From the IMG/VR virus record IMGVR_UViG_3300042889_001503, positions 1-64,000 of that record: a DNA stretch of 64,000 nucleotides, one strand, 5' to 3'. The position numbers and the translations under genes are program-made. The notes under the pieces were generated by a model. That model worked only from the letters and a program-made list of their open reading frames with translations, did no database searches and was not told the origin of the DNA. Shown one piece after another: positions 4,338 through 46,695 of the stretch (positions are counted from its first letter, which is position 1; every line of letters starts with the position of its first letter).

Positions 4338-4367
4338 AAAAAAAGAGGACTATTTGTCCTCTTTTTT
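4338..4367. terminator. bidirectional terminator between convergent genes
   Basis: A run-GAGGAC-TATTT-GTCCTC-T run. Confidence 0.85.
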
Positions 4368-12038: not shown

Positions 12039-13808
12039 ATGTCGAATTTAACAAAAGAACAAGTATTAATAGAATACGTAAAATGTAGTAGAGATATTGA
12101 ATACGCACTTAAGACGTATTTAGAAACTTATGATAACACCGTTAAAAAATATGTTCCATTGGAACTTTTTCCGGACCAGTTAACATTACTGAATGACTAC
12201 GAAGAATACAATGAGAATATAGCATTAAAATACAGACAGGCCGGGGTATCAACAGTTACCGCGGCTTGGATGTCTAAAAAACTTGTATTCGCAAGAAAAG
12301 AAACTCCCGAAAAAATATTAATTATCGCCAATAAGTTGGATACTTCATTGGAGATGGCGAACAAGATAAAAGCGTTCGTTGGTCAATGGCCGTCTTGGAC
12401 AGGTGTAGATTTTGATAAAGCAAAAAATTCCCAAAAACATTATAAGTTAACAAACGGATGTGAGGTTAAAGCCGTTGCAACATCTAAGGATGCCTTGCGT
12501 GGATTTACACCAACCATACTTGTATTTGATGAGGCGGCGTTTATTGAGGCAGATAGTGATTTCTGGTCTGCCTGTATGGCGTCCCTATCTACGGGGGGTA
12601 AAGTAATTGTGGTTTCAACACCTAACGGTTATGACGCAATTTACTATGAAATATACGACCAAGCGTTACGTAATATGAATGACTTCAAAATTACGGAAAT
12701 GTTTTGGTATCGAGACCCAAGATACACCAAAGATTTATTTTTTGTTAAAACAGATAACATTATTCATTATTTGTTAAACAAAGAGGAATATGACCCTAAT
12801 GGATTTATTGATTGGGGTAGTAAATCATATGACGCTCGAAACTTTGATGATGTTAAATTATTAATGAATGACGGATACAAACCTTGTTCATCTTGGTTTG
12901 AGGCGATGGTTAAGAAATTAAAATACGATAAACGTAAGGTTTCTCAGGAGTTAGAATGTAACTTTTTAGGTTCCGGAGATAACGTATTTGATTCTCTTAT
13001 GATGCAAGATATTCGTGAAAATCAAATCCAAGAACCTATTAACAAATTGATGGGGAATGCTCTTTGGATTTGGAAGGAACCGGTTGTTGGACATAAATAC
13101 ATTATGGGTGTCGACGTTTCCCGTGGGGATTCTGAAGATTTTAGTTCATTTCAAATTGTTGATTTTGATGAAAGAGAACAAGTTGCTGAATATGTTGGTA
13201 AATTACCACCCGATACTATGGCTGAAATTTGTCATAAATGGGCTGTTATATATTCTTGTTTTGTCGTTATCGATATTACAGGTGGTATGGGTGTTGCAAC
13301 TTCAAGAAAACTCCAAGAAATGAATTATCGTGATTTATATGTTGATGGTGTTGATGTCTCTAACAAATGGAAATACGACCCAGCCGCGGCAGATAAAATT
13401 CCGGGATTAAATTTTAATAATAAAAGGGTTCAAATTATTGCCTCATTTGAAGAGGCGATGAGACATAAATTTAGGATTTATAGTTCTCGTTTAAATAATG
13501 AGATGAACACCTTTGTATATATCAATGGTAGACCTGACCACCAAAAAGGACATCACGATGATTTAATTATGTCAATCGCGATGGCGACGTATGTTGCGGA
13601 GTCTTCTTTTGGAAAATTAACTAAAGTTACGGAACAAACTAAAGCGATGTTAGATTCTTGGTCCGTTAACAATAATGAATCAATTAAAGAAAACATCAAT
13701 TTTAACCCTGTAATCCCACATTATCAAGATAGAATAAATCAATTTAACAGCCAACAAGTTAGTCGAGACGATTATCAAAAATATGGTTGGTTATTTGGCG
13801 GAATGTAA
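12039..13808 (+). CDS. terL: terminase large subunit (T4 gp17-like)
   Basis: LKYRQAGVST (Walker A region), LVFDEAAF (Walker B), STPNG, QELEC, nuclease motifs GVDVSRG and HDDLIM. Confidence 0.92.
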   Translation: MSNLTKEQVLIEYVKCSRDIEYALKTYLETYDNTVKKYVPLELFPDQLTLLNDYEEYNENIALKYRQAGVSTVTAAWMSKKLVFARKETPEKILIIANKLDTSLEMANKIKAFVGQWPSWTGVDFDKAKNSQKHYKLTNGCEVKAVATSKDALRGFTPTILVFDEAAFIEADSDFWSACMASLSTGGKVIVVSTPNGYDAIYYEIYDQALRNMNDFKITEMFWYRDPRYTKDLFFVKTDNIIHYLLNKEEYDPNGFIDWGSKSYDARNFDDVKLLMNDGYKPCSSWFEAMVKKLKYDKRKVSQELECNFLGSGDNVFDSLMMQDIRENQIQEPINKLMGNALWIWKEPVVGHKYIMGVDVSRGDSEDFSSFQIVDFDEREQVAEYVGKLPPDTMAEICHKWAVIYSCFVVIDITGGMGVATSRKLQEMNYRDLYVDGVDVSNKWKYDPAAADKIPGLNFNNKRVQIIASFEEAMRHKFRIYSSRLNNEMNTFVYINGRPDHQKGHHDDLIMSIAMATYVAESSFGKLTKVTEQTKAMLDSWSVNNNESIKENINFNPVIPHYQDRINQFNSQQVSRDDYQKYGWLFGGM

Positions 13809-13828: not shown

Positions 13829-16800
13829 ATGGGATTTGATAGTAGAAAAAAATCGGGTAATATAATCGGGGGGTCAAGACTTAATGTTATTGGTCAGGGG
13901 ATTTATAATGTGAAAATTATCCCACCTGGATTTACTAAGCGTTTACCTGCGTATGCCGATGCTGGTGGAAACCCACCAAGTCAAACACCAAGTAACACTC
14001 CAACTCAAACTCCAACACTATCAATAACCCCATCAAATACGCCAACACCTACATATACTCCAACACCAACTCAAACTGCAACACCATTATATTGTGATTT
14101 TAGTTATTATGTTAACGCAATCACTCCAACTCCAACATCAACATCATTAGCGTGTGATTTCACATATGAAGTCGAATTATTTACAAATACCCCAACACCA
14201 ACCCCAACACCAACTCCAACACAAACAATAACACAAACACCAACACAAACTGAGACGCCAACACAAACACCAACACAAACTGAGACGCCAACACAAACTC
14301 CAACACCAACACAAACTGAGACGCCAACACAAACCCCAACACAAACCCCAACATCCTCTCCATTACCACCAACAGTTGAGTATTTCCAAGATTGTTGTGA
14401 TAGTCTTACCGTATATAAAGTTGGTGGTGTATCAACCCCTATTATTGTTGGTAACACTTATTACATCAACACTGATGGATTTAGTGGTTGTGGGACTGCG
14501 GTAAGTGGTCCACCATATAATAGTCAATCTTTAATTATTAGTGTTACATCATACTCAAATTGTGTTCTGTGTGAGGTAGACAATCCTTGCCCAACACCAA
14601 CACCAACACCAACAATGACAGTAACACCAACAAATACTCAAACCCCAACGGTTACACAAACACCGACGGTTACTCAAACACCAACTAATACACCAACAAA
14701 TACTCAAACCCCAACTAATACACTTACACCTACACCTACTCCAACAGTTTGTATTCCACAAATGATATATAGTGGTGAAAAATTTATTAATATACCACTT
14801 CATACTAGTGCGTCTTTCAAACCGGATGGTACGATATTATATATTGCAATTCATAATGGTTCACCAACTGATAGTGTATGTGCTTATTCATTATCAACAC
14901 CGTGGGATGTTTCAACAATTACATTACCACTAATAGGATGTTCAATTGCTGTTCCGGTAATTTCCGGATTAACCCCTACTAGTGTAATTGGTCATCATTT
15001 TTCACCGGACGGTAGTAAATTATTTGTAGTTGAGACAGCATCAAAAAGTGTCCTTAGATATATATTATCAACATCGTGGGATGTTACAACATCTAGTTAT
15101 TCACCCGGTGACTTATTTACTATAGTTGGTTTAACTCCGTCACATATTGATTTTACCCCTGACGGTTTATTTATGTTTGTTACTGTTACGGGTAGCCTTC
15201 TTAAAAAATATAGTTTAACCACACCTTGGGTTATAAATACGGGGGTTGTGGAAATTCAATCAATTTCCAACTCAATTGTTTCCGATTTTACTTTTCAAAA
15301 TAGTGGAACTTATTTGTTTTCAATAGTATCAGGTCCAAGTATAAGAAGACAAACACTATCTACACCGTATGATTTAACTTCAATTGTTCCTGTTTTAACT
15401 CAGACAGAAAATGTAAGTAGTTTTATTTCAGGAGGTAATCTTTATTCTCTTAATTTTAAAGATGGTTATAAAGGGTTTATTGGTGGTTATTACTCAACCG
15501 GTTTGAACGGAATTACAGCTTTTAATCTTACCTGTGAATACGATATTAGCGGGACTTTAATATTACCAACACCTACTCCAACACCAACTCAGACGGTTAC
15601 ACCAACCAATACAGTTACTCCAACACCAACATTACCACCATCGTTTGTTTCAGTATGGAGAACAACAACACCATCTGAAAGTATTACATTACCATATTCA
15701 CCATCAGGAACATATAGTGGAACAATAGATTGGGGCGACGGTAGTATATCCGCTAACACATATGCAAATAGAACACACACATACTCATTATCAGGTAATT
15801 CTACTGTTACAATTTATGGAACAACTAATGGTTGGGCGTTTGGTAATACTGGTGACATATTAAAAATTAGAGAAGTTTTAAAATGGGGACCATTAAAAAT
15901 TAGTAATGGTGCTCAAGTTTTTAGAGGATGTAGTAATTTAGTATTAACCGGTGTTACGGACACTATTGATTTAACAAGTGTTAATAATTTAATTTATATG
16001 TTTGGAGGTTGTTCATCTCTTACAACCATCAACAACGTTAATAGTTGGAATGTTTCAGGAATTACCGTTATGAGTAATATGTTTCAATCATCAACTTTTG
16101 ACGATGATATAAGTTCTTGGAGTGTTTCAAATGTTACAGATATGAATCGTATGTTCCAATTTGGAGCATTTAACCATAATATAAATTCGTGGAATGTTTC
16201 AGGGGTTACAAGTATGGAAAATATGTTTAGACAATCTTCTTTTAATCAACCATTATCAGGTTGGAATGTTTCAAAGGTTACATCTACTATGGCAGGTATG
16301 TTTGATGGAACCTTATTTAACCAAGATATAAGTATGTGGAATGTTTCAGGGGTTACAAGTATGAGTGGTATGTTTAGATACACCCCATTTAATTATTCTC
16401 TTAATAATTGGAATGTTTCAAAGGTAACAAATATGTCTAATATGTTTTATGGTGCGTCATTTAATTTACCATTATCAGGCTGGAATGTTTCAAAGGTTAC
16501 AAATATGAATTCTATGTTCGCATCAACTTCACAATTTAACCAAAACATTAATTCGTGGAATGTTTCAGGTGTTACAGATATGGGTTCTATGTTTTATCAA
16601 AACGCATATTTTAACCAACCATTATCCGGATGGAGTGTGTCAAACGTTAGAAATATGTCTTTTATGTTTTACAATTCACCATTTAATTATCCTATTGGTA
16701 ATTGGGATGTTTTAAATGTTACAGGAATGACATCTATGTTCCAAAGTTCATCATTTAACCAAGACATCGGAAATTGGAATATATCGGGAGTAACCAATTT

Positions 16801-17017
16801 CACTGATTTTATGTTTGCAAAAACACCGATTACATTCTCAACAATAAATTTAGATTCTATTTATAATGGATGGCAAACCAAAACACCGCAAACCGGATTA
16901 ACAATTAATTTTGGTTCTGCAAAATACACATTAGCGAGTCAACCGGGTAAAGATATACTAACAGGTTCAACTATGAGCGGTGGATATGGTTGGACAATAA
17001 CAGATGGGGGGATATAA
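13829..17017 (+). CDS. large surface/fibre protein: Pro/Thr linkers, Cys-rich module, beta-propeller-like repeats, DUF285/BspA-like repeats
   Basis: (PT)n tracts; F.PDG..L(Y/F)....Y.LSTPWDV repeats; IDWGDG; FNQPLSGWNVS.VT.M..MF repeats. Confidence 0.85.
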   Translation: MGFDSRKKSGNIIGGSRLNVIGQGIYNVKIIPPGFTKRLPAYADAGGNPPSQTPSNTPTQTPTLSITPSNTPTPTYTPTPTQTATPLYCDFSYYVNAITPTPTSTSLACDFTYEVELFTNTPTPTPTPTPTQTITQTPTQTETPTQTPTQTETPTQTPTPTQTETPTQTPTQTPTSSPLPPTVEYFQDCCDSLTVYKVGGVSTPIIVGNTYYINTDGFSGCGTAVSGPPYNSQSLIISVTSYSNCVLCEVDNPCPTPTPTPTMTVTPTNTQTPTVTQTPTVTQTPTNTPTNTQTPTNTLTPTPTPTVCIPQMIYSGEKFINIPLHTSASFKPDGTILYIAIHNGSPTDSVCAYSLSTPWDVSTITLPLIGCSIAVPVISGLTPTSVIGHHFSPDGSKLFVVETASKSVLRYILSTSWDVTTSSYSPGDLFTIVGLTPSHIDFTPDGLFMFVTVTGSLLKKYSLTTPWVINTGVVEIQSISNSIVSDFTFQNSGTYLFSIVSGPSIRRQTLSTPYDLTSIVPVLTQTENVSSFISGGNLYSLNFKDGYKGFIGGYYSTGLNGITAFNLTCEYDISGTLILPTPTPTPTQTVTPTNTVTPTPTLPPSFVSVWRTTTPSESITLPYSPSGTYSGTIDWGDGSISANTYANRTHTYSLSGNSTVTIYGTTNGWAFGNTGDILKIREVLKWGPLKISNGAQVFRGCSNLVLTGVTDTIDLTSVNNLIYMFGGCSSLTTINNVNSWNVSGITVMSNMFQSSTFDDDISSWSVSNVTDMNRMFQFGAFNHNINSWNVSGVTSMENMFRQSSFNQPLSGWNVSKVTSTMAGMFDGTLFNQDISMWNVSGVTSMSGMFRYTPFNYSLNNWNVSKVTNMSNMFYGASFNLPLSGWNVSKVTNMNSMFASTSQFNQNINSWNVSGVTDMGSMFYQNAYFNQPLSGWSVSNVRNMSFMFYNSPFNYPIGNWDVLNVTGMTSMFQSSSFNQDIGNWNISGVTNFTDFMFAKTPITFSTINLDSIYNGWQTKTPQTGLTINFGSAKYTLASQPGKDILTGSTMSGGYGWTITDGGI

Positions 17018-17020
17018 TAT

Positions 17021-19432
17021 ATGGGAACAATTTTAAAAATATTATCAATAAATTACGACGGACAATTCGCCGACATTACCTTTTACCCTTGTTCGGGTGG
17101 GAGTATTAATATCGGTGAAGTTAACTTACCATATAATTATTATTCGGAAAATTACTACGGAACATATAACATTTATTTACTTGATTCGGGTAAAACTTGT
17201 TTGTTAAATGTTCCTTGTTTAACACCTACGCCTACTCCAACAACAACAATGACATTAACTCCAACAAATACTCCAACACCAACAAACACACCCGCACCAA
17301 ATTGTGATTTATTAGGTTTAGATATTACAACCCCAACCCCAACTCCAACACCTACAATGACACCAACACCAAGTTCTACACCATTATTACCATTTATATC
17401 TGTGTGGAGAACAACATCTCCGTCTGAGAGTATAACATTACCTTATTACGGTTTAGATTATTCAGGAACCATTGATTGGGGTGATGGAAATTTTTCGGCG
17501 AATACATTTGCAAATAGGACACATATTTATACAACTCCTGATGACTATGTAATAACTATTACAGGTAAAGTTAATGTGTGGTCGTTTTATTATACACCAA
17601 CAAGTAAACTTAAAATAAGAGAAATAACACAGTGGGGATGTCTTAACATAACTCAACTATCATATAATTTTTATGAGTGTTCTAATTTAATATTAACAGG
17701 TGTTACTGACACTCTAAATTTATCTCAAGTGACAAATTTAACATATATATTTCGTGGATGTTCGTCTATTACAACCATAAATAATATTAATAATTGGGAT
17801 GTTTCTAACATTACAGGTATGTCAGGAATGTTTGGTCAAAGTAATTTTAACGATAACATTAATAATTGGGATGTTTCGGGAGTTGAGGATATGAGTTATA
17901 TGTTCCAAGGAGCAACATCTTTCAACGAACCATTATCTGGTTGGACTGTTTCAGGTGTTACAAATATGTCGAATATGTTCCAAGGAACAACATCTTTCAA
18001 CCAACCATTATCAGGTTGGAACGTTTCAAATGTTGCGTCTATGACATATATGTTCCAAAATTCACAATTTAATCAAGATATTAATAATTGGGATGTTTCA
18101 AGTGTTATTTATATGAATTATATGTTTAACGGCACACCGTTTAATCAACCGTTGTCAGGTTGGAATGTTTCAAATGTTACAAGTACGTATTATATGTTTG
18201 CTAGCACCCCATTCAATCAACCAATCGGAAATTGGGATGTCTCAAAAGTGGTTAATATGGAGGGTATGTTCCAAAACGCAACATCCTTCAACCAACCAAT
18301 TAATAATTGGAATGTTTCAGGAGTTACCAATATGACATCAATACTCCAAAGCACTGATTTCAACCTACCATTATCCGGATGGAATGTTTCAAATGTCTAT
18401 AATATGACTTTTATGTTTGCCAATTCACCATTCAATCAACCAATTGGGAATTGGAATGTTTCGGGTGTTACAAATATGGTAGGTATGTTCCAAGGAGCAA
18501 CATCGTTCAATCAACCATTATCCGGATGGAATGTAAGTAACGTTAATAGTATGAGGCAAATGTTTAATACTGCTACCGACTTTAACCAACCTATTGGGTC
18601 TTGGAATGTTTCGGGGGTTACAGATTTGGGTTATATGTTTTATGCGTCATCATTTGACTATCCATTATCTGGGTGGAATGTTTCAAAAGTTACAGATATG
18701 ACTTATATGTTTGCCAATTCCCCATTCAATCAACCAATCGGAAATTGGGATGTCTCAAAAGTTAAAAATATGTCAGGTATGTTTGTCAATACATCATTTG
18801 ATTATCCGATTGGGAATTGGACTGTTTCAGGGGTAACAAATATGAGTAATATGTTTCAAAACGACCAATATTTTAATCAACCATTATCTGGATGGAACGT
18901 CTCAAATGTTGTTGATATGACATCTATGTTCCGAAATTCACAATTTAATCAAGATATTAATAATTGGGATGTTTCAAGTGTTATTTATATGAATTATATG
19001 TTCGCATCTTCCCTATTTAATCAACCATTATCCGGATGGAATGTTTCAAATGTTGGTGATATGAACAATATGTTTTATAATTCGGAGTTCAATTACCCTA
19101 TTGGAAATTGGGATGTATCTAATGTTGTTAATATGAACAATATGTTTAATATTAATACATATTTTAACCAAGATATTGGAAATTGGAGTATATCAAATGT
19201 AACTAATTTTACTGACTTTATGTTAGGTAAAACACCATTAACATTCTCAACAACAAATTTAGATTCAATCTATAGTGGATGGTCAACTAAAAATCCGTAT
19301 ACAGGAAGAACAATAAATTTTGGAAGTGCTAACTACACAATATCCGGAGGACAACCAGGTAAAAATACATTAACGGGTTCAACTATGAGTGGAGGATATG
19401 GTTGGACAATAACTGATGGAGGAGGAATTTAA
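17021..19432 (+). CDS. DUF285/BspA-like repeat surface protein with shared N-terminal module
   Basis: Roughly 20 repeats of about 25 aa (FNQP(L/I)..W(N/D)VS.VT.M..MF); IDWGDG; PT linker. Confidence 0.88.
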   Translation: MGTILKILSINYDGQFADITFYPCSGGSINIGEVNLPYNYYSENYYGTYNIYLLDSGKTCLLNVPCLTPTPTPTTTMTLTPTNTPTPTNTPAPNCDLLGLDITTPTPTPTPTMTPTPSSTPLLPFISVWRTTSPSESITLPYYGLDYSGTIDWGDGNFSANTFANRTHIYTTPDDYVITITGKVNVWSFYYTPTSKLKIREITQWGCLNITQLSYNFYECSNLILTGVTDTLNLSQVTNLTYIFRGCSSITTINNINNWDVSNITGMSGMFGQSNFNDNINNWDVSGVEDMSYMFQGATSFNEPLSGWTVSGVTNMSNMFQGTTSFNQPLSGWNVSNVASMTYMFQNSQFNQDINNWDVSSVIYMNYMFNGTPFNQPLSGWNVSNVTSTYYMFASTPFNQPIGNWDVSKVVNMEGMFQNATSFNQPINNWNVSGVTNMTSILQSTDFNLPLSGWNVSNVYNMTFMFANSPFNQPIGNWNVSGVTNMVGMFQGATSFNQPLSGWNVSNVNSMRQMFNTATDFNQPIGSWNVSGVTDLGYMFYASSFDYPLSGWNVSKVTDMTYMFANSPFNQPIGNWDVSKVKNMSGMFVNTSFDYPIGNWTVSGVTNMSNMFQNDQYFNQPLSGWNVSNVVDMTSMFRNSQFNQDINNWDVSSVIYMNYMFASSLFNQPLSGWNVSNVGDMNNMFYNSEFNYPIGNWDVSNVVNMNNMFNINTYFNQDIGNWSISNVTNFTDFMLGKTPLTFSTTNLDSIYSGWSTKNPYTGRTINFGSANYTISGGQPGKNTLTGSTMSGGYGWTITDGGGI

Positions 19433-19436
19433 TATT

Positions 19437-21650
19437 ATGAAAACTTTTGAAATATTTACAACAAATTACGACGGGTATATCGGAGATATAAGTTATTCCG
19501 CATATACCGGAGGAACTATTAGTTTAGGTTCACAGTTATTACCATACGATTATAATACAGATTATTATTATGGAACATATACCGTATACATACCTTTTTA
19601 TAATAAAACCTGTATTTTAGATTATCCGCCACCTTCTTGGGATTTAATCGGTGATACGTTAATATTGTTCATTTCAAGTTGGAAAACCGACAATGAAGGT
19701 TTTACTAACACTAATCAAATTGGTATTGTGTTAGACCCATCAGGAACTTTTAATTTTGTAATTGATTGGGGTGATGGAAATACAGACACAATAACATCAT
19801 ATAGTCAACCTGAGCTTATACATACTTACAATGTTATAGGAACATATACTATACGTATGTTTGGAGTAATTGACGGGTTTAATATAGGAAATTATGCTGG
19901 TGATTATGGTAAAATTTTAAGTGTTCAACAGTGGGGTGATGTAAAATTAATTGATGGTGGATATCAATTTTATTATTGTTTTAATTTAGATTTATCTACC
20001 GTAATCGATACTTTAGACACTTCAAATCTGACTAATATCGACGCTATGTTTGCAGAATGTTATAGTTTAACATCTGTAAATAATATACAATCGTGGGACA
20101 TTTCTAATATAACAAGTTTATCTTATTTATTCTCCGGATGTATATTATTTAATCAAAACTTAAATAATTGGGATATTTCGGGAATTACAAATATAAGTGG
20201 AATGTTTTATTTGACAAGTTATAATCAACCATTATCCGGGTGGAATGTTTCAAATGTTCAATACACAAATTATATGTTTAGTAATTCTCAATTTAATCAA
20301 CCATTATCCGGATGGGATGTTTCAAATGTTGTTGATATGAGTAATATGTTTGAGTCTTGTCCATTTAACCAACCAATCAATAATTGGAATGTTTCAGGTG
20401 TTACAAATATGGGTTATATGTTTAATGGGTCATCATTTAATCAACCATTATCCGGATGGGATGTTTCAAATGTTACAGATATGAGTTATATGTTCTATAA
20501 CAACTCAATATTTAATCAACCTATTGAAAATTGGAATGTTTCAAATGTTACAAATATGAGTGGTATGTTCTATTACAACTCAGCATTTAACCATCCAATT
20601 GGGAATTGGAATGTTTCGGGTGTTACCAATATGAGTTATATGTTCTATTACAACTCAACATTTAACCATCCAATTGGGGATTGGAATGTTTCGGGTGTTA
20701 CCAATATGTCGGGTATGTTCTCTAATAATCAAATATTTAATCAACCATTATCCGGGTGGAACGTCTCAAATGTTACCAATATGTCGAATATGTTCTATTC
20801 CAACTCAACATTTAATCAACCATTATCAAGTTGGACTGTTAGTAATGTAACAAATATGTCAGGTATGTTTTATAATAATAGAATATTTAACCAACAAATT
20901 GATAATTGGGATGTATCTAAAGTTACAAATATGAGTTATATGTTTTTTAACAGTTTATTTGACCAACCATTATCCGGATGGAATGTTTCTAAAGTTACTC
21001 TTATGTTTTCCATGTTTAATAATTCTCAATTTAATCAAAATATAAATAATTGGAATGTTTCTGGAGTTACAAATATGAGTGATATGTTCTCTAATAATCA
21101 AATATTTAATCAACCATTATCCGGGTGGAATGTTTCAAAGGTTACAAGTATGAGTAATATGTTTGCCACTTCATCATTCAATCAACCAATTAATAATTGG
21201 AATGTGTCGGGTGTCACAGATATGGGTGCGATGTTCTATCAATCTCAATTTAATCAACCATTATCCGGGTGGAATGTTTCAAATGTTATTAGTTTGTTTA
21301 ATATGTTTAGGGGTTCAAAATTTAATCAACCTATTGGAAATTGGGATATTTCTAAAGTATCTAATGTTGTGTATATGTTTTATGAAAACCAATATTTTAA
21401 ACAAAATTTAGGGAATTGGAACATATCAGGTGTTACAAATTTTTATTATTTTATGGGAACTAAAAACCCTATTACTTTTTTCACATACAATTTAGATAGT
21501 ATTTATAATGGGTGGGTAACAAAAAACCCACAAATAGGGATACAGATTAATTTTGGTAGTGCAAAATACACATCAGCTGGTTTGGCGGCAAGGACAACCC
21601 TTGTAACAACTTATTTTTGGTCAATTAGCGACGGAGGAATGTTAACTTAA
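19437..21650 (+). CDS. DUF285/BspA-like repeat surface protein with shared N-terminal module (start MKTFEIF)
   Basis: Same repeat type; the ATG at 19437 follows the upstream stop and aligns with the paralog N-termini. Confidence 0.88.
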   Translation: MKTFEIFTTNYDGYIGDISYSAYTGGTISLGSQLLPYDYNTDYYYGTYTVYIPFYNKTCILDYPPPSWDLIGDTLILFISSWKTDNEGFTNTNQIGIVLDPSGTFNFVIDWGDGNTDTITSYSQPELIHTYNVIGTYTIRMFGVIDGFNIGNYAGDYGKILSVQQWGDVKLIDGGYQFYYCFNLDLSTVIDTLDTSNLTNIDAMFAECYSLTSVNNIQSWDISNITSLSYLFSGCILFNQNLNNWDISGITNISGMFYLTSYNQPLSGWNVSNVQYTNYMFSNSQFNQPLSGWDVSNVVDMSNMFESCPFNQPINNWNVSGVTNMGYMFNGSSFNQPLSGWDVSNVTDMSYMFYNNSIFNQPIENWNVSNVTNMSGMFYYNSAFNHPIGNWNVSGVTNMSYMFYYNSTFNHPIGDWNVSGVTNMSGMFSNNQIFNQPLSGWNVSNVTNMSNMFYSNSTFNQPLSSWTVSNVTNMSGMFYNNRIFNQQIDNWDVSKVTNMSYMFFNSLFDQPLSGWNVSKVTLMFSMFNNSQFNQNINNWNVSGVTNMSDMFSNNQIFNQPLSGWNVSKVTSMSNMFATSSFNQPINNWNVSGVTDMGAMFYQSQFNQPLSGWNVSNVISLFNMFRGSKFNQPIGNWDISKVSNVVYMFYENQYFKQNLGNWNISGVTNFYYFMGTKNPITFFTYNLDSIYNGWVTKNPQIGIQINFGSAKYTSAGLAARTTLVTTYFWSISDGGMLT

Positions 21651-21653
21651 TTT

Positions 21654-21863
21654 ATGGAATATATATATAGAATATCGACAAATAATTATACCGGATATAC
21701 CGCCGATATAACTTTTAATCCATCAACAGGTGGAACAATTAATATTGGTACGGTTACATTACCGTATGATTACCCTACAGATTATCCGTATGGTGATTAT
21801 TATATATACATACCGGCAACAGGTGTATCGGGGTCTTTGAATAATCCCCCACCAACACCTTAA
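21654..21863 (+). CDS. stand-alone copy of the shared N-terminal module (69 aa)
   Basis: NYTGYTADITFNPSTGGTINIGTVTLPYDY..DYPYGDYYIY aligns with the N-termini of 17021, 19437 and 21884. Confidence 0.8.
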   Translation: MEYIYRISTNNYTGYTADITFNPSTGGTINIGTVTLPYDYPTDYPYGDYYIYIPATGVSGSLNNPPPTP

Positions 21864-21883
21864 TTTATACGAACTAACAATAT

Positions 21884-24800
21884 ATGAGTACAACTTTAGA
21901 AATATTAACTGCGAATTATAACGGACAATTAGCCGATATAACCTTTTTCCCTTGTTCGGGGGGGGTTATAAATATTGGTGAAGTTACATTACCGTATAAT
22001 TACGAATCCGAAAATTATTATGGAACTTACATTATTTACGTAATGTATTACGATGAAACTTGCTCGTTGGATATTCCTTGTATATCATTAACACCGACAA
22101 ATACACCGACAAATACACCGACACCTACTATTACAGATACTCCAACTCAAACACCAACTCAAACTAATACTGTTACACCAACTAATACTGGAACACCAGC
22201 ACAAACCCCAACACAAACGACAACGCAGACACAAACACAAACACCTTCCAATACAGCTACACCTACTAACACTATCACTCCAACTCAAACTCCAACTAAG
22301 ACTCATACTCCCACACCAACAAATCGCCCTACAACAACACCAACAATGACACCAACAAATACTCCTACACAAACAAATACTCAAACAAATACGCCAACAA
22401 ATACGCAAACGCAAACACAAACGCAAACTCAAACCACTACACAAACTCCGACTAACACTCCAACACAAACACAAACTCAAACACAAACACCGTCACCATT
22501 ACCTCCAACAATTGGGTATTTTGAAGATTGTTGTTACCCATCTATAATATATAAAGTGGGTGGAATAATATATCCTGTTTTTATTGATAACTTCTATTAT
22601 ATAGAGACTACCGGATATAGTGGTTGTGTTAAAGCAATAAATCCTACGTCATTTAACAGTCAATATGAAATTATTAGTTTAACTTCATATGTGAGTTGCC
22701 TTATTTGTCAATTAGACCACGAATGTATTTTACCTACACCTACACCAACTCCAACTCAAACTGTGACTCCAACGGTAACGCCAACAGTAACTCCAACAAT
22801 TTCAACAACACCAACAAATACTCCTACACAAACACAAACACAAACTTCAACACCAACACAAACACCTACCAATACACCAACAAACACTCAAACACAAACT
22901 CAAACACAAACACAAACTCAAACTTCAACACCGACACAAACACCTACTCAAACTCCGACTAACACTCCAACCAAAACTCAAACTCCAACAACAACAACGA
23001 CATTAACCGCAACACCAACTCAGACTCAAACTCCAACAAACACTCAAACACCAACAAAAACTCAAACACCAACACCAACAAAAACAATGACTCAAACACC
23101 TACTAATACTCAAACACAAACACCAACCAAAACTCAAACACAGACGCCTACAAACACACCAGTTTGTTCAGCACCTCAAATGTTAGGTGTTACATTGTCA
23201 TCAGGTTCAATTTTATCTGTTTCGATTATTCCGGGACCAAATTGTAGTGGTATTTTTATGATATATTCTTATGATAATATAAACTTTAATTCTGCTGTGG
23301 CAACTCCAAGTAACTGTACATCACCGTTTACTTTTGACTCTCTTACTACAACAGGAAATGTTTATGTAAAAGTGGGTCAATTATGTACATCAGGTGGTAT
23401 TAGCGCATATTCTGAAGTTTTCCCATATTTCTTCCCAACCCCAACTCCGACACCAACACCAACAAATACACAAACGCCTACTAAAACTCCAACCAACACT
23501 CCAACTAAAACTCAAACCCCAACAACAACAACAACATTAACTGCAACTCCGACTCAGACTCAGACGCCAACTAAAACTCCTACTAACACTCCAACCAAAA
23601 CACAAACACAAACTCCAACTAAAACTCAAACTCCAACAACAACAACAACATTAACTGCAACTCCGACGCAAACACAAACGCCTACTAAAACTCCTACACA
23701 AACACCTACTCGAACAAACACTCCAACGCCAACAACATCGTGTGGTGTTACATTAATTTCTACCACATATGTTTCAGGAACCACTTGGAATTATAATTTC
23801 ACAACAGCAGGTTCTTGTGGAACACTTTTACCGGAATATTCGTCTGATAATATAACTTGGACTTTGGGTGGTGCAGGTGGTTGTACTTCACCTAGGTCGG
23901 CAATAACCGGTATTAATAGTGGAACAATATACTTTAGAATGACATTATTTTGTTCGTCTCTTACGGGAGTTTCAAATGTTATTACTTATGTGTTCCCATC
24001 ACCAACACCTACACCTACAAGAACTCAAACACCAACACCAACAAAAACACCTACACCTACACCGACTGAAACACCACCTGGAGTAACTTGTGTATGTTAT
24101 GAATTATATTGGTCTCCACCAGGTGGTCCTTTCTTTGGTTCAACAACTTTTGATTATATTGATTGTGAAGGGTTCCCTGCAAGTTCCTTTGCTAACAATA
24201 TGGGTGATTCACCGAATATTTGTGCTCAAGAAAACACTATTTCATTTGGCGGTGGTGACAATTCAGGTGGTTGGCTTCCATCAATATATAATTGTTGCGC
24301 AACAAATATTACATTAGGATATAGAGTGTCAAATGCTGTATGTTCGTTACCTGGTTGGGCGTTAGTTAATCAATGTATAAATCGTTCCGCAATTTTAGGT
24401 TTATGTGACGCAACCGAATTATATGATGATGATATATCCGGTAATTGTACCTTCGCATTTGCAGCTGCGGGTTATTATAAAACCACTGATAACTTTAGTA
24501 GAAGATATTGGGATGGAACCGCATTTACGGGTGCTTGTTTTTCGTGTGGTTGTTTAGTTGTTAATACAGTAATAACATTATCTGATGGTTCAACTAAATT
24601 AATACAAGATGTTCAAGTTAACGACATACTTAAATCTATTGATGTTTCAGGAATGCCACAACCATCAAACGAATGGTACTCTTGGAGTAGTGACACTTTA
24701 AATTATGTAGAATCAACCTCTACAGTAATTAATTTTACAATATATGAATTTGATTCGGTTATTAATATTAATAACGATAAATTAATTGCGACTGATTCTC

Positions 24801-25006
24801 ATAACCACGTTGTTAAACAAAATGGTGTTTGGTATATCAGAACAACATCTGATTTAAATGTTGGTGATGTATTATTAGATATTGACAATACTGAATTTGA
24901 AATCACATCATTAGTGACAATTACAGAATCAACAACAGTTTATAACGTTGATGTGAATAATAGTAATTTATATTTTGCGAATAATGTCTTAACTCACAAT
25001 AAGTAA
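21884..25006 (+). CDS. mucin-like Thr/Pro-rich surface protein with C-terminal Hint domain
   Basis: Shared N-module; long TPTQT tracts; Cys-rich modules; C-terminal CLVVNT...TDSH...VYNVDV..LYFANNVLTHNK. Confidence 0.85.
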   Translation: MSTTLEILTANYNGQLADITFFPCSGGVINIGEVTLPYNYESENYYGTYIIYVMYYDETCSLDIPCISLTPTNTPTNTPTPTITDTPTQTPTQTNTVTPTNTGTPAQTPTQTTTQTQTQTPSNTATPTNTITPTQTPTKTHTPTPTNRPTTTPTMTPTNTPTQTNTQTNTPTNTQTQTQTQTQTTTQTPTNTPTQTQTQTQTPSPLPPTIGYFEDCCYPSIIYKVGGIIYPVFIDNFYYIETTGYSGCVKAINPTSFNSQYEIISLTSYVSCLICQLDHECILPTPTPTPTQTVTPTVTPTVTPTISTTPTNTPTQTQTQTSTPTQTPTNTPTNTQTQTQTQTQTQTSTPTQTPTQTPTNTPTKTQTPTTTTTLTATPTQTQTPTNTQTPTKTQTPTPTKTMTQTPTNTQTQTPTKTQTQTPTNTPVCSAPQMLGVTLSSGSILSVSIIPGPNCSGIFMIYSYDNINFNSAVATPSNCTSPFTFDSLTTTGNVYVKVGQLCTSGGISAYSEVFPYFFPTPTPTPTPTNTQTPTKTPTNTPTKTQTPTTTTTLTATPTQTQTPTKTPTNTPTKTQTQTPTKTQTPTTTTTLTATPTQTQTPTKTPTQTPTRTNTPTPTTSCGVTLISTTYVSGTTWNYNFTTAGSCGTLLPEYSSDNITWTLGGAGGCTSPRSAITGINSGTIYFRMTLFCSSLTGVSNVITYVFPSPTPTPTRTQTPTPTKTPTPTPTETPPGVTCVCYELYWSPPGGPFFGSTTFDYIDCEGFPASSFANNMGDSPNICAQENTISFGGGDNSGGWLPSIYNCCATNITLGYRVSNAVCSLPGWALVNQCINRSAILGLCDATELYDDDISGNCTFAFAAAGYYKTTDNFSRRYWDGTAFTGACFSCGCLVVNTVITLSDGSTKLIQDVQVNDILKSIDVSGMPQPSNEWYSWSSDTLNYVESTSTVINFTIYEFDSVININNDKLIATDSHNHVVKQNGVWYIRTTSDLNVGDVLLDIDNTEFEITSLVTITESTTVYNVDVNNSNLYFANNVLTHNK
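24551..25003 (+). other. Hint (intein/Hedgehog-like) domain
   Basis: Cys1 at 24551, block B TxxH, block F VYN, terminal His-Asn followed by a single Lys and a stop. Confidence 0.8.
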
Positions 25007-25070: not shown

Positions 25071-26957
25071 ATGGAAAATAATGAAAATAATGATTTAACG
25101 GTTTGGCAAAGGTTATCAAGAGCCTTTGGACCAAACGCGTTATTAAATCAAGACTACCCAACATATAAGTTAGATAAGAAAGAGTTGTTAAAGACAACAT
25201 CACAAGCGGAATATGAAAGAGAAAAATTACAAGCTCAACAAACATATTACCTATCTAACCAATGGACTAAGATTGAAAGTAATCTATACACTCAAGCAGT
25301 TTATTATGAACCAACTCGTTTGGCTTCATTTTACGATTATGAATCTATGGAATACACCCCTGAGATATCAGCGGCATTAGACATCTATGGTGAAGAATCA
25401 ACAACTGTTGATGAGAATGGATATATGTTACAAATTTATTCTGAATCAAAAAGAATAAAATCTATACTAGCCGATTTATTCAATAACGTATTAGACGTTA
25501 ATACGAATTTAACTATGTGGACAAGAAATACTTGTAAGTATGGTGATAACTTTGTTTATTTAAAATTAGATTCAGATAAAGGTATTGTTGGTTGTATGCA
25601 ATTACCAAACATTGAAATAGAACGTTTGGAAAGAGGTATGGCAGCAAAATCTGCAACTATAGATGAACCTGCAGAACACAAAGGATTAAGATTTAAGTGG
25701 AAGGCAAAAGATATGGAGTTTAACTCTTGGGAAGTTGCCCACTTCCGTTTATTAGGTGACGATAGAAAACTTCCATACGGAACGTCAATGTTAGAAAAAG
25801 CAAGACGTATTTGGAAACAATTATTATTATCGGAAGATGCGATGTTAATTTATAGAACTTCAAGAGCACCGGAAAGACGTGTGTTCAAAGTATTCGTTGG
25901 TAATATGGATGATAAAGATGTTGAGGCTTACGTACAACGTGTTGCAAACAAATTTAAACGTGACCAAGTTGTTGATGCTAAAACAGGTAATGTCGATATG
26001 AGATTCAACCAAATGGCTGTTGACCAAGATTACTTTATTCCTGTTAGAGACCCAGCGGCGGCATCACCAATTGATACGTTACCGGGAGCAACAAACTTAT
26101 CTGAAATTGCCGATATAGAATATATCCAAAAGAAATTATTAACCGCTCTTCGTGTTCCTAAAGCATTTTTAGGATTTGAAGAAACTGCCGGTGATGGTAA
26201 GAATTTATCATTACAGGATATTCGTTTTGCAAGAACAATCAATAAGATTCAAAAATCAATGATTGCCGAATTAAATAAAATTGCAATCATTCATTTATTC
26301 TTATTAGGGTTTGAAGATGAGTTATCTAACTTTACGTTAGGACTAACCAATCCATCATCCCAAGCAGATTTATTAAAGAATGACCTTTGGAAAGAAAAAA
26401 TTGCATTATACCAACAAGCCGTTGCGGCAATTGCGGGTATTGCTCCGGTATCTGTATCGTGGGCTAAGAAACATATTTTAGGATTCTCTGATGAGGAAAT
26501 CAAACTTGATTTACAACAACAAAGAATTGAGATGGCTGTCGGAGCTGAATTAACAAATACGGCAACTATCATAACACATACAGGTATCTTCGATAATATC
26601 GATAAATTATATGGTAACCCTGCATCCGGAGCAACTGCCGGTGGTGCGGCACCATCATCCCCACCACCACCGGGAGGTGGAGGAGGTTTCGGCGGAGGTG
26701 GAGACTTAGGTGGAGGAATGGAAGATTTAGGTGGACCTGAACCAGGACCTGAACCGGGTGGACCTGAACCGGGTGGAGCCCCTGAGGCGGCAGCTCCCGA
26801 AGCAGAAGTAACTCCTGAATCATTTAATAGAGATAATTTAAAAATATTGGTAGAAAGAAGTAATATGACAGAAGATGATTCATACATTGATTTATCCAAA
26901 GGTGGAAACTCTTTAGGAGAAATTGAAGCTCAATTAGGTAAACTTCTAAAAGATTAG
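25071..26957 (+). CDS. portal protein (T4 gp20-like)
   Basis: LLLSEDAMLIYRTSRAPERRVFKVFVGNM, DYFIP, IDTLPG, YIQKKLLTALRVP; G/P-rich tail. Confidence 0.92.
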   Translation: MENNENNDLTVWQRLSRAFGPNALLNQDYPTYKLDKKELLKTTSQAEYEREKLQAQQTYYLSNQWTKIESNLYTQAVYYEPTRLASFYDYESMEYTPEISAALDIYGEESTTVDENGYMLQIYSESKRIKSILADLFNNVLDVNTNLTMWTRNTCKYGDNFVYLKLDSDKGIVGCMQLPNIEIERLERGMAAKSATIDEPAEHKGLRFKWKAKDMEFNSWEVAHFRLLGDDRKLPYGTSMLEKARRIWKQLLLSEDAMLIYRTSRAPERRVFKVFVGNMDDKDVEAYVQRVANKFKRDQVVDAKTGNVDMRFNQMAVDQDYFIPVRDPAAASPIDTLPGATNLSEIADIEYIQKKLLTALRVPKAFLGFEETAGDGKNLSLQDIRFARTINKIQKSMIAELNKIAIIHLFLLGFEDELSNFTLGLTNPSSQADLLKNDLWKEKIALYQQAVAAIAGIAPVSVSWAKKHILGFSDEEIKLDLQQQRIEMAVGAELTNTATIITHTGIFDNIDKLYGNPASGATAGGAAPSSPPPPGGGGGFGGGGDLGGGMEDLGGPEPGPEPGGPEPGGAPEAAAPEAEVTPESFNRDNLKILVERSNMTEDDSYIDLSKGGNSLGEIEAQLGKLLKD

Positions 26958-28475: not shown

Positions 28476-29201
28476 ATGAATTTAAGAATATTACAACCAA
28501 GTGAATCAGGGAAAGGTATATTAGTTGAATACGATGCTGGGTATATTAACCCAAATGATAATCGTAACGAAACATTAATTAGAGAATCTAGCGAAACTCT
28601 TGACCACACTAAACCAATTGAGTTTTATGCCGTATTACAAAAATATGATACCCCTAATAGAAATGGTAGATTATATCCTGAACGTATATTAAAAAGAGAG
28701 GCGGAGAATTATAAAAAAATGATTAAAAAGGGAACAGCCCTATCCGAGTTAAATCACCCGGAATCATCTTTAATCGATTTAGATAGAGTTTCTCACGCAA
28801 TCACCGAAGTATGGTGGGAAGGTAATGTCCTAATGGGTAAAATAAAACTACTTACATCACCGGGATATCACGAAAGTGGTATTTGTTCAACCAAAGGTGA
28901 CTTAGCAGCTAACTACCTAAGACAAGGAGTTACATTAGGTATCTCATCAAGAGGTGTAGGTTCCCTTAAAAAGATTGGTGAACAAAATGAAGTTCAAGAC
29001 GATTTTGAATTAATCTGTTTTGATTTAGTATCATCACCATCAACCCCGGGAGCGTATCTATTCTTAAATAAAGAGGATAAACAACTATACGATGAGAACT
29101 TAGAAGAAGAGAAAAAAATGAGTGTTGAGAGACACGTTGGTGATTCCGGAAATAAATCGCTTGACTTAATGAAAAAATTAAACGATTATTTGGGTTACTA
29201 A
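28476..29201 (+). CDS. prohead core protease (T4 gp21-like)
   Basis: NRNGRLYP, ELNHP, SHAI, GISSRGVGSL, DLVSSPSTPGAY. Confidence 0.92.
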   Translation: MNLRILQPSESGKGILVEYDAGYINPNDNRNETLIRESSETLDHTKPIEFYAVLQKYDTPNRNGRLYPERILKREAENYKKMIKKGTALSELNHPESSLIDLDRVSHAITEVWWEGNVLMGKIKLLTSPGYHESGICSTKGDLAANYLRQGVTLGISSRGVGSLKKIGEQNEVQDDFELICFDLVSSPSTPGAYLFLNKEDKQLYDENLEEEKKMSVERHVGDSGNKSLDLMKKLNDYLGY

Positions 29202-31136: not shown

Positions 31137-33008
31137 ATGGGAGCATTATTAGAATCAGGATTAGTTGGTAACATCGGGTTAAAACACCTTAAAGTTATCA
31201 AAGAAGACACAATCAACAAATGGGATAAATTAGGATTCCTAGAAGGTCTTAAAGGACACATGAGAGAAAACGTAGCTCAGTTATATGAGAACCAAGCGTC
31301 TTTCTTAATAAACGAAGCTACAGGTGAAGGTTCAAACGGTTCATTCGAAACGGTTGTATTCCCTATCGTAAGAAGAGTATTCTCTAAATTACTTGCGAAT
31401 GAAATCGTATCAGTACAAGCTATGAACTTACCAATCGGTAAATTGTTCTTCTTCGTACCTAAAATTCAAGGTTACCAATCAGGTCAAGAAACTATCTTAG
31501 GAACTCAATTAGGTGGTGGTACTCACTACGGACCAATTGGTGCGGCTGATGGACAAACTGCGGCTGATGGTCAATCAGGAGCTGGTTACACAGGAGCAAA
31601 CGCATTCAAGAAAAATCTTTATGATTTATTCTATGAAGGAAACGAAGGTCAATTAGACCCTCCAGGATTGTTTGACTACTCTAAAGGACAATGGTCGGCA
31701 GTTACTAAACCAACAACAGTTATGGTTTGGTCAAATGGTAGTTTAGTTGTTGCTGACGCAACTGCATTAGCTAACCAATTCAATGGAAAAAACATTAGAA
31801 AAGTAATCGTAGCATTATCAGGATTCACAACTGCTGGTACAGGTAAATTAATCGGACCAGACGGTAATGAAGTTGATACTGAAACTTTCTTATCTGATTT
31901 AAGAATCTACAGTGATTCTACAACTGCATGGACTTCAACAACATCACCTTGTAGTGTTGTAAGTGGGTCTACCGGAATAAACTCATTATTGTTTAGAGTT
32001 GTTACTCAACAATATGGTGAAGGTATCGTTTCAGGATTAAACGGAAGAGGAACTACATCATTTGCAACTACAGGTAATAACGGTACTTACAATGATACTT
32101 GTTCTCCTGCAGGAATCATCTACTTAGAAGTTGATTTATCTTGTCCAACTTGTCCTTCTTGTGGTGACACATTAGACGGTTATACAGGAACAACTATCGG
32201 AGTATTACCATCAACTGGGTTTACTGCTGTTTACAGACGTTACGCTGATATGGAATTTGAAGATAAAATCGGTGAGGTTTCTTTCGAATTAGATTCAGTT
32301 ACTGTATCTGTTACAGAAAGAAAATTAAGAGCACAATGGTCTCCTGAGTTAGCTCAAGACGTTGCAGCTTTCCACAACATCGATGCTGAGGCTGAATTAA
32401 CAGCTTTATTATCTGAACAAGTTGCGGCTGAAATCGACCGTGAAATCTTAAGAGATTTACGTAAAGGTGCGGCATGGAACTTACGTTGGGATTACAATGG
32501 TTGGAGAAGAATCTCTTCAACAACAAACTATACACAAAAAGATTGGAACCAAACTTTGATTACTGCAATTAACCAATTGTCAGCACAAATCCACAAATCT
32601 ACTTTAAGAGGTGGAGCTAACTGGATTGTAGTATCTTCTGAGGTTTCAGCGATTATGGATGACTTAGAATACTTCCACGTATCTAATGCTTCACCTGAAC
32701 AAGACCAATATAATATGGGTATTGAAAGAGTTGGAACATTAGCAGGACGTTACCAAGTATATCGTGACCCTTACTTCCCAGCTAACCAAGTGTTAATTGG
32801 ACACAAAGGAACATCGTTACTTGATACAGGATACATCTACGCTCCGTATGTACCATTACAATTAACACCTACAATGTACAACCCATTCAACTTTACACCG
32901 ATTAAAGGTATAATGACTCGTTACGCGAAAAAGATGGTGAATAATAGATTTTACGGCAGAATTACTGTAGATGGTGTTAGAACATTCGATTTAAGAGAAT
33001 TGAGATAA
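31137..33008 (+). CDS. major capsid protein (T4 gp23-like)
   Basis: FPIVRRVF..L.A..IVSVQAM, RKLRAQWSPELAQDV.AFH.IDAEAEL, EIDREI, GYIYAPYVPL, GIMTRYA. Confidence 0.95.
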   Translation: MGALLESGLVGNIGLKHLKVIKEDTINKWDKLGFLEGLKGHMRENVAQLYENQASFLINEATGEGSNGSFETVVFPIVRRVFSKLLANEIVSVQAMNLPIGKLFFFVPKIQGYQSGQETILGTQLGGGTHYGPIGAADGQTAADGQSGAGYTGANAFKKNLYDLFYEGNEGQLDPPGLFDYSKGQWSAVTKPTTVMVWSNGSLVVADATALANQFNGKNIRKVIVALSGFTTAGTGKLIGPDGNEVDTETFLSDLRIYSDSTTAWTSTTSPCSVVSGSTGINSLLFRVVTQQYGEGIVSGLNGRGTTSFATTGNNGTYNDTCSPAGIIYLEVDLSCPTCPSCGDTLDGYTGTTIGVLPSTGFTAVYRRYADMEFEDKIGEVSFELDSVTVSVTERKLRAQWSPELAQDVAAFHNIDAEAELTALLSEQVAAEIDREILRDLRKGAAWNLRWDYNGWRRISSTTNYTQKDWNQTLITAINQLSAQIHKSTLRGGANWIVVSSEVSAIMDDLEYFHVSNASPEQDQYNMGIERVGTLAGRYQVYRDPYFPANQVLIGHKGTSLLDTGYIYAPYVPLQLTPTMYNPFNFTPIKGIMTRYAKKMVNNRFYGRITVDGVRTFDLRELR

Positions 33009-43790: not shown

Positions 43791-44540
43791 TTATTTAACC
43801 ATAGTTTGGACTAACTCAAAATACATATTTTTATATTTCTTCATTGACCCTCTAATTTCTTTAGTAGAAAGGTTGGTCATTTCCCTCAATGAGAGTAATA
43901 TTATATTCTTGTTGAATTTATTATTGTCGTTACCCACAAAAATATTTTCATAATTATCGAATAAATCGTATAATGCTTGTCCGAGTTTTATTTCATTCTC
44001 ACTTAGATTTTCATTTTTAACAAACAAATCTAATTTGATTAAAAAATGATGAATAATCCTTTCAGAATCTAAATTATCATTTTCAATGTAATATGCGAAC
44101 CCTTCATCGTTTTCTAAACTAGTTGAAATATCTTCGTAAGAAATTTTTCTATTAGTTTCTTTTTGGTCCTTAATAATTTGACCCATAAGATAATTTTTAC
44201 ATATGGTTCCAAAATAAGAGTAAGCCTTCTTTTCTTTAGAAGGCTTAAACTTATCTATTTTTGTTATTAAGAATGAGTGAGTATCTGTATGGATTTCATT
44301 AAAATCCATGTCTTTTCTATATAATTTGTATCTTCTTATAATCGAAGATATCATCTTATCTAAAGGTTTTAATAAAAACTCATTATAAATTTTATTTCTC
44401 TCGTGATGACATTCGGTTTCTAAAAATCGAACAACTGCCAGTTCTTCTCGAACATCAAAATAATTTAATTGGGTTGGTTTTCTACCTTTCTTCTTTAACT
44501 CAACGCTGGTGTCTCCTGTCAAATTAACTGATTCAGTCAT
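43791..44540 (-). CDS. sigma-factor-like protein (T4 gp55-like late sigma)
   Basis: Region-2-like KIDKFKPSKEKKAYSYFGTICKNYL. Confidence 0.6.
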   Translation of the reverse strand: MTESVNLTGDTSVELKKKGRKPTQLNYFDVREELAVVRFLETECHHERNKIYNEFLLKPLDKMISSIIRRYKLYRKDMDFNEIHTDTHSFLITKIDKFKPSKEKKAYSYFGTICKNYLMGQIIKDQKETNRKISYEDISTSLENDEGFAYYIENDNLDSERIIHHFLIKLDLFVKNENLSENEIKLGQALYDLFDNYENIFVGNDNNKFNKNIILLSLREMTNLSTKEIRGSMKKYKNMYFELVQTMVK

Positions 44541-45352: not shown

Positions 45353-45359
45353 ATTGTTC

Positions 45360-46415: not shown

Positions 46416-46416
46416 A

Positions 46417-46695
46417 TTATATTTTATTTAGTAAGTTTTTATAAAGTAGCGTGTTAAACGCAATTTTAAATGGTATTGATAAATTGTTAGTACCCTTTGC
46501 ACCTAATTGTTCATCAATCTCTTCCGGTTCGTCCATAATTATTTCCATCATTAATTTAACCGTTTCATATTTAATTATACTAATGTGGGTTGATTCTGTA
46601 ATACCTGAGGTAACAACTTTATCCCCTTTAATTTGAACGTAGTCATCTATTTTGTCTAAATCCAAATAATAATTTTCACCTAATACTTTTAACAT
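46417..46695 (-). CDS. hypothetical protein
   Basis: ORF within the operon. Confidence 0.7.
   Translation of the reverse strand: MLKVLGENYYLDLDKIDDYVQIKGDKVVTSGITESTHISIIKYETVKLMMEIIMDEPEEIDEQLGAKGTNNLSIPFKIAFNTLLYKNLLNKI

Follow-up and report, generated by a model that had tools for sequence, protein, structure and literature searches.

We analyzed a 64,000-nucleotide (nt) stretch of viral DNA (hereafter the window), corresponding to positions 1 to 64,000 of the IMG/VR virus record IMGVR_UViG_3300042889_001503, which is 159,912 bp long and estimated to be 53% complete. The source of this DNA is an uncultivated freshwater jumbo phage. Within it, the plus-strand open reading frame (ORF) P0001 (21884..25006) encodes a modular fiber- or decoration-like protein of 1040 amino acids (aa) with a Hint domain at its C-terminus. 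At a probability that we place at roughly 55%, the last 151 residues of this protein would, by analogy with characterized HINT domains, constitute a working Hint of the type-A BIL-like kind, one that processes its own chain a single time and thereby removes itself.

The Hint domain, which is of the type-A BIL kind by its fold and profile matches, spans Cys890 to Asn1039 (150 aa; 24551..25000, plus strand like all features of this ORF). Its first residue, Cys890 (Cys1; codon TGT at 24551-24553), is the only cysteine inside the domain and forms with the preceding glycine the predicted scissile junction Gly889/Cys890 (24548..24553), where Cys1 is invariant in the relatives and the -1 residue is Gly in most of the close ones. 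Block B is represented by Thr970-Asp-Ser-His973 (the TxxH motif; 24791..24802) and block G by the penultimate His1038 and the terminal Asn1039 (24995..25000). These are followed by Lys1040 (25001-25003), which stands at +1 as the sole 'C-extein', and by a TAA stop codon (25004-25006). The initial annotation had placed at 24551-25006 an intact Hint domain with Cys1, TxxH and a terminal His-Asn, preceded by an N-extein ending in Phe-Ser-Cys-Gly and lacking Cys, Ser or Thr at +1; its coordinates and residues proved exact, with all four catalytic positions present. A C-extein hidden behind read-through of the stop was rejected as a candidate, as the +1 residue would be Lys anyway and the frame is closed again 12 codons later, with the portal gene beginning at 25071. 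The domain is not a split-intein half either, all four blocks lying within one domain.

Pfam searches gave only sub-threshold matches, to Intein_splicing (22.9 bits versus a cut-off of 35.8), PT-HINT (17.6 versus 27.7) and Hint (PF01079; 14.4 versus 29.7); BILs have no dedicated Pfam model and hence no curated threshold. A family profile comprising the Hint domain and its phage relatives was matched against solved structures, and recovered the BIL2 domain of Tetrahymena BUBL1 (6y75/6tmm) with an E-value of 3e-11, the type-A BIL 2lwy with 4e-9 and the best intein with 4e-6. An AlphaFold2 (AF2) model of aa 860-1040, with a predicted local distance difference test (pLDDT) score of ~88-93 over the Hint domain, matched BIL2 with a Foldseek E-value of 4e-10 and a VIA Z of 19.3 (root-mean-square deviation 1.7 Å over 137 residues), followed by 2lwy (VIA Z 18.3), the mini-inteins (~17) and Hedgehog (16.5). 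Altogether, the model reached VIA Z values of 14-19 to 83 chains and a Foldseek probability of 1.00 to BILs, inteins and Hedgehog. The C-terminal domain is therefore modeled as a HINT fold, closest by a small margin to the BIL branch, and the BIL analogy drawn in the initial annotation was borne out by profile, Foldseek and VIA alike.

Type-A BIL domains were reportedly described by Amitai in 2003 and by Dassa in 2004. The phage domain shares with the solved representative from Clostridium thermocellum (2lwy) the HINT fold, Cys1, TxxH and His-Asn, the absence of a +1 nucleophile and of an endonuclease (the 150-aa domain leaves no room for a homing endonuclease), and its residence in a variable, probably extracellular protein rather than at a conserved site of an essential gene; all the sequence-level hallmarks of a type-A BIL are thus found together. 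It differs in sitting at the extreme C-terminus with a tail of 1-10 aa, or in tandem with linkers of 1-6 aa, in its strong preference for Lys at +1, and in being preceded by a disulfide-type, Cys-rich and fast-evolving module (see below). Compared with the BILs described in reviews, the phage origin, the terminal or tandem placement, the +1 Lys and the coupling to a Cys-rich tip would all be new. BIL2 of Tetrahymena thermophila BUBL1 (6y75, 6tmm) is the best match in both sequence and structure, though at an identity of only 23-26%; it is eukaryotic, lies between two ubiquitin-like domains and uses an acceptor Lys that belongs either to a folded C-extein or to another protein (PMC8616854), whereas the phage Hint has no folded C-extein and follows a fiber-like N-extein.

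Other HINT classes fit less well. Class 1 mini-inteins (gp41-1, Ssp DnaB) have the same fold and four motifs, but the phage domain has Lys and a stop in place of a +1 Cys, Ser or Thr, no C-extein, and hypervariable N-exteins at its flank instead of a conserved insertion site. The Hedgehog Hog/Hint domain (1at0) is also C-terminal and cleaves a Gly/Cys bond via a thioester, with the N-terminal part released or modified; however, it uses cholesterol as the nucleophile, carries a sterol-recognition region after the Hint and lacks a terminal His-Asn, whereas the phage domain has the His-Asn and no such region. PT-HINT domains likewise occur near the C-termini of long filamentous or repeat proteins, with 3' ends exchanged by recombination (PMC3482391), but they release a toxin domain located behind the Hint; nothing lies behind the phage Hint, and its PT-HINT score stays under the Pfam cut-off. 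The Peptidase_S74 chaperone domains are alike in role only, being C-terminal fiber domains that remove themselves after their job; their fold and chemistry, based on a Ser-Lys dyad, are unrelated, and a Pfam search of the HINT-fold domain returned no Peptidase_S74 match at E up to 1.

The domain is under strong constraint. Its median pairwise ratio of nonsynonymous to synonymous substitution rates (dN/dS, or omega) is 0.11 among 15 relatives (dS up to 1.9), with an overall range of 0.07-0.15 at dS 0.4-1.9; in the same genome pairs, the Hint gave an omega of 0.10-0.15 as against 0.04-0.07 for the portal. The 150 aa before Cys1, on the other hand, have an omega of 0.43-0.82 in all nine pairs compared. 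In an alignment of the relatives the step in conservation falls exactly at Gly/Cys: downstream of it almost every column is fixed, and upstream the fixed columns are a skeleton of ten cysteines, a few glycines and some aromatic residues. Identity is correspondingly 73-90% within the Hint versus 37-53% in the adjoining upstream module. Given the purifying selection and the fixed columns downstream of the junction, the Hint is a maintained and functional domain, and the contrasting behavior of the Cys-rich module before it suggests a host-facing tip.

A word search together with scans of viral contigs recovered the Hint at 71-100% identity at the end of proteins of ~400-1442 aa, with N-exteins of ~340-1442 aa that differ in content. 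These close relatives all retain Cys1, TxxH and the Thr-His-Asn-Lys ending; the identical ending occurs in more than 20 independent metagenome contigs from different samples, and the Lys followed by a stop is also conserved in diverged relatives. Among the alleles there are two kinds of ending, namely Lys and a stop, or Lys and a 6-8-residue acidic tail containing Pro and Phe. In every longer-tail allele (loci L030/L031/L037, 6847-6915; L043, 6239-6330; L044, 1581-1650), the final 20-33 nt of the Hint ORF are repeated, untranslated, just behind the stop; the Lys-stop alleles have this stretch once only. The duplicated stretch is a recombination scar and identifies the 3' end of the Hint as an exchange point.

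As close relatives alone are insufficient to decide whether such an ending is an accident or a family trait, an exhaustive profile search of representatives was run. It returned 40,536 representatives at E up to 1e-3, 11,153 at 1e-10 and 336 at 1e-30. The best 150 hits of this search were taken for a census, in which 147 of the best proteins contained 314 full Hint domains. Cys1 is present in every one of these (314/314; 100%), block B has its Thr in 290 (92%) and its His in 303 (96%), and block G its penultimate His in 293 (93%) and terminal Asn in 305 (97%). The +1 residue is Lys in 186 of the 314 (59%), Arg in 16 (5%) and Cys, Ser or Thr in 32 (10%), figures to be read with a slight bias toward Lys, worth a few of more than 140 bits, as half of the rows of the query profile have Lys in that column. 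Tandem Hints, numbering 2-8 per protein, were found in 130 of 149 proteins (the 148 best hits and P0001), with linkers mostly of 1-6 residues that start with Lys (K, KG, KGG, KGGG, KF). In 58 of 144 proteins of the census the last Hint ends no more than 15 residues from the C-terminus, and, with the cluster of P0001 itself set aside, 17 of 55 such terminal Hints, each representing a different 50%-identity cluster, end exactly in His-Asn-Lys-stop. The ending without a C-extein is thus a design that recurs and in which lysine is favored at +1. His-Asn-Lys-stop marks an extensive and so far unstudied family of Hints from large aquatic phages, whose members probably cleave themselves off or pass on the end of the fiber. 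The initial annotation was right that a C-extein is absent, yet this is no mere absence, the His-Asn-Lys ending being conserved across the family.

The catalytic residues persist down to 25-30% identity (phage NCTB, Dickeya phage AD1 gp108 and loci L109, L112, L121 and L122), and the same design is found in cultured jumbo phages at 25-35% identity. For instance, the relative from phage NCTB has a poly-Gly/Cys junction, TxxH and His-Asn, followed by a 7-aa tail. In Dickeya phage AD1 gp108 (L002, 5020-6459) and its counterparts in Erwinia Alexandravirus (L114/L115), the Hint belongs to a collagen-like (Gly-X-Y) 'virion structural protein' encoded next to tail-fiber genes; this homolog ends in His-Asn, Thr and nine more residues and, given the Thr at +1, could splice classically. 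The phages bearing the AD1-type homolog are 'hairy' jumbo myoviruses whose hair proteins are unidentified (PMC6143709), and we may speculate that Hint-bearing proteins are candidates for these hairs; the sections of the Dickeya AD1 paper that were consulted make no mention of an intein, Hint or collagen. One viral contig has the His-Asn-Lys-stop ending at only 31% identity, and others have two or three tandem Hints. The +1 residue of other clear members is Ala in NCTB, Thr in AD1 and L112, Val in L121 and Ser in L106. Two of the tandem-Hint proteins are encoded on phage-like contigs with PolB, PhoH, a Clp protease and rows of 2OG-Fe(II) oxygenases; at the tandem-Hint loci (L106, 3086-5362; L105; P0018-P0020; L125, 10001-12262; L127, 10001-12715), such rows of four oxygenase genes adjoin the Hint gene. 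The arrays of L106 and L105 open with a Hint that starts with Ser and has no TxxH. Standalone Hint-like ORFs of 153-155 aa (NCTB BN7874_135, L001, 744-1205; the 155-aa ORF of G004, L124) occur directly after a Hint-ended gene; they lack Cys1 and TxxH, but still end in Val-His-Asn-Lys/Arg with 1-2 further residues. Ten of the database relatives were checked for their source names, which all read 'hypothetical protein'.

The remainder of P0001 is a modular N-extein of 889 aa, ending in Phe-Ser-Cys-Gly and composed of 28.7% Thr and 11.8% Pro, with 29 cysteines. Its N-terminal domain of ~64 aa (21884..22075) is common to four adjacent genes, with an identity of 43-69% to the N-terminal parts of the proteins encoded from 17021, 19416 and 21654, of which the last is a 69-aa protein that barely exceeds the domain alone. 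The same sharing of this domain among neighboring genes is seen in the relatives, and it is probably a common virion-attachment module for interchangeable distal parts. By composition and cysteine map, four Thr/Pro-rich linkers then separate five globular Cys-bearing modules: the linkers (aa 65-210, 279-428, 511-623 and 700-738) alternate with three small modules (aa 211-278, 429-510 and 624-699) over 22076..24097. The 'mucin stalk' of the initial annotation is a compositional analogy only. Imperfect tandem repeats with periods of 6-114 nt run through the linker DNA (22091-24076) and are a likely source of the length variation among alleles. In PHROGs, the protein has a single 'virion structural protein' match, phrog_15511, which covers the linker region only.

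Directly upstream of the Hint lies the fast-evolving Cys-rich module (aa 739-889; 24098..24550), with ten cysteines that are invariant among the relatives and a C-terminal end of the form Cys-x-x-Cys-Gly. It has no match in Pfam and no usable match in an ESM Atlas feature search, and an AF2 model of aa 740-1040 reached a mean pLDDT of 41 from a shallow alignment. Conserved cysteines are located at -2/-3 and -5/-6 relative to Cys1 (24536-24553), forming Cys-x-x-Cys-Gly/Cys here and Cys-x-Gly/Cys in others. Some inteins have disulfide 'redox traps' of similar appearance, and by analogy with these the redox state might restrain or set off Hint processing.

In HINT domains, Cys1 and block B generate a thioester at the N-terminal junction, and the terminal Asn cyclizes with the aid of the penultimate His to cut the C-terminal junction; without a Cys, Ser or Thr at +1 no branched ester is formed, and type-A BILs mainly cleave, and splice to a minor extent by way of the liberated amine (PMC4031507, PMC7664689, PMC7765530). 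By this analogy, the chemistry that the initial annotation proposed, in which an N-terminal thioester forms and is then resolved by cleavage or transfer, would come naturally to a BIL-like Hint. The annotation's statement that canonical splicing cannot occur was too strong, since type-A BILs do splice, albeit in low yield, even when +1 offers no nucleophile (PMC4031507). Because they do so through the amine freed by Asn cyclization, the product here could be the stalk plus Lys; and the idea of an external nucleophile has a real precedent, since BIL2 ligates its N-extein to lysine side chains (PMC8616854).

In the reading that we favor, Cys890, aided by Thr970 and His973, would turn the Gly889-Cys890 peptide bond into a thioester, while Asn1039, aided by His1038, would cyclize and remove Lys1040. 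The thioester would be resolved by water or by a nearby amine, either that of the freed Lys or its side chain, and the 889-aa body would leave its 17-kDa Hint cap, ending in Phe-Ser-Cys-Gly with a free Gly carboxylate or in Gly-Lys. As judged from gene order and the annotations of others, this body is most likely a virion fiber or decoration; it would be held by the N-terminal 64-aa domain, with the Cys-rich module next to the Hint as its distal, host-facing tip. The Hint itself would serve as a detachable cap at the C-terminus, with a function like that of the self-cleaving C-terminal chaperone domains found on tailspikes and tail fibers, though without shared descent. Several points weigh against this. 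Conservation spans the whole domain, which is more than a single-turnover cap needs and may mean that a binding role has been kept; 2-8 tandem Hints occur in many relatives, which a simple 'cap' leaves unexplained; the conserved +1 Lys is unneeded for plain hydrolytic release and hints at a different chemistry; and both the virion location and the N-terminal anchor are inferred solely from gene order and the annotations of others.

In a doubtful but possible alternative, the Hint is a ligase: its thioester would join the C-terminal Gly889 of the stalk by an isopeptide bond to the side chain of a lysine, such that the stalk is cross-linked and not simply released. This acceptor could be its own Lys1040 (a lysine-mediated 'splicing'), or it could belong to a different virion protein or to the host surface. 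BIL2, the closest solved structure, forms precisely such a bond between a Lys epsilon-amine and a C-terminus, and conjugates its N-extein to several substrates (PMC8616854). The predominance of Lys at +1 and the rarity of Cys, Ser and Thr among the 314 related Hints, the recurrence of His-Asn-Lys-stop in 17 separate clusters, the K, KG, KGG and KGGG linkers between tandem Hints, and the frequent Gly or poly-Gly at -1, which recalls a ubiquitin-like C-terminus, all agree with it. However, +1 is not Lys in several clear members (NCTB, AD1, L112, L121 and L106), no acceptor protein has been identified, and the Lys column of the query profile itself contributes a small bias. Moreover, the sister genes with the same N-terminal domain have no Hint, implying that cross-linking is unneeded for this class of proteins. 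A broader form of this idea, which we put forward tentatively, is that the His-Asn-Lys Hints of large aquatic phages are a distinct mechanistic class, in which the +1 Lys replaces Cys, Ser or Thr and either acts as the nucleophile or passes the thioester to other lysines. Such a class would yield isopeptide-linked products without ATP, in the form of Lys-capped fibers, fiber-virion cross-links or chains via the K-G-G linkers, and would be a viral counterpart of the 'ubiquitin-dispensing' reaction of BIL2, used for virion construction or host attachment.

We regard it as unlikely that the domain is instead a non-processing knob, that is, a HINT fold retained as a structural or binding distal tip or docking domain, with its catalytic residues serving a structural role. 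The conservation of the entire Hint, far above that of the neighboring module, would suit such a role, as would the occurrence of the module in otherwise unrelated phages, a situation often seen for receptor-binding tips; the degenerate standalone ORFs of NCTB and G004 show in addition that the fold can persist without its N-terminal nucleophile. Yet the retention of the catalytic positions at 92-100% across hundreds of domains, at identities as low as 25-30%, is hard to explain without catalysis, the Hint has no Cys beyond Cys1 as opposed to the 29 of the N-extein, and every characterized HINT domain with this set of residues auto-processes (PMC4031507). The very improbable possibility that the domain is a remnant or an artefact (a decaying intein, a polymorphic-toxin stalk that has lost its toxin or a truncation by mis-assembly), for which the sub-threshold PT-HINT and Intein_splicing matches and a 3' recombination scar in some alleles, implying exchange of ends here, might be cited, is contradicted by the strong purifying selection, by the recurrence of the identical ending in more than 20 contigs and of Lys-stop in diverged relatives and 17 clusters, by the absence of a toxin-like ORF after the Hint (the portal follows 64 nt downstream), and by the lack of a homing endonuclease and of a conserved host gene.

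Self-processing of phage fibers is known mainly from the S74 chaperone domains, and a cap or ligase of the Hint type would add another route to it, based on a different chemistry. A literature search, outside which most subscription journals lay, found no report of a C-terminal Hint or BIL domain in phage fibers or virions. The family concerned is large, its 147 best relatives being dominated by terminal and tandem Hints with a +1 Lys. Its members are naturally occurring Hints of small size (150 aa) that contain a single Cys, have Lys fixed at +1 and carry next to no C-extein, the very features needed to test amine-mediated splicing or ligation in HINT biochemistry; they could also serve as tags for traceless C-terminal cleavage or Lys ligation. 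For phage biology, the family presents a mobile module, made up of a fast-evolving Cys-rich tip and a conserved Hint, that is exchanged among unrelated jumbo phages. The last ~300 aa of P0001, comprising the Cys-rich module and the Hint, recur in complete jumbo phages of 308, 343 and 373 kb whose neighborhoods have no other gene in common with the window; since otherwise unrelated neighborhoods carry it, the module moves between phage lineages. A megablast search of the region against cultured phages found no match, and the 160-kb source record, which is ~53% complete, yielded no second Hint at E up to 10.

The Hint gene lies in the structural block of the genome, devoted to head and packaging functions, between the genes for the terminase large subunit (12039-13808) and the portal (25071-26957), whose start is 64 nt after the Hint ORF; the prohead protease of family S77 (28476-29201) and the major head protein (31137-33008) follow. 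Three genes for DUF285/BspA-like repeat proteins (13829-21650) are found between the terminase and the 69-aa ORF. The sister genes of the cassette (17021..21863, plus strand), namely the DUF285 (BspA-like repeat) genes at 17021-19432 and 19416-21650 and the 69-aa ORF at 21654-21863, have no Hint, and all carry the common N-terminal domain. The interval from terminase to portal (13829-25006) is a variable cassette: in relatives with a terminase and portal 84-94% identical to those of the window (L031, L038, L072, L092 and L093), the DUF285 and Hint-ended genes vary in number, order and content.

The GC content of the window is ~32%. Further downstream, the minus strand carries a phage-borne sugar cluster (44540-55882) comprising two GT2 glycosyltransferases (44540-45352 and 54485-55882), a GDP-mannose 4,6-dehydratase (48044-49033), two NAD epimerase/reductase genes (49014-49916 and 51054-51833) and a DegT aminotransferase (49913-51064), along with a PhoH gene (47275-48036); in the area of this cluster, at 52-56 kb, the GC fraction falls to 0.25. 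The cluster might have a role in glycosylating the Thr/Pro-rich linkers or in altering the host surface. Near the opposite end of the window, also on the minus strand, a phage ClpB-like chaperone (4350-6395) displays two AAA+ domains (AAA_2, 237 bits, and ClpB_D2-small, 74 bits).

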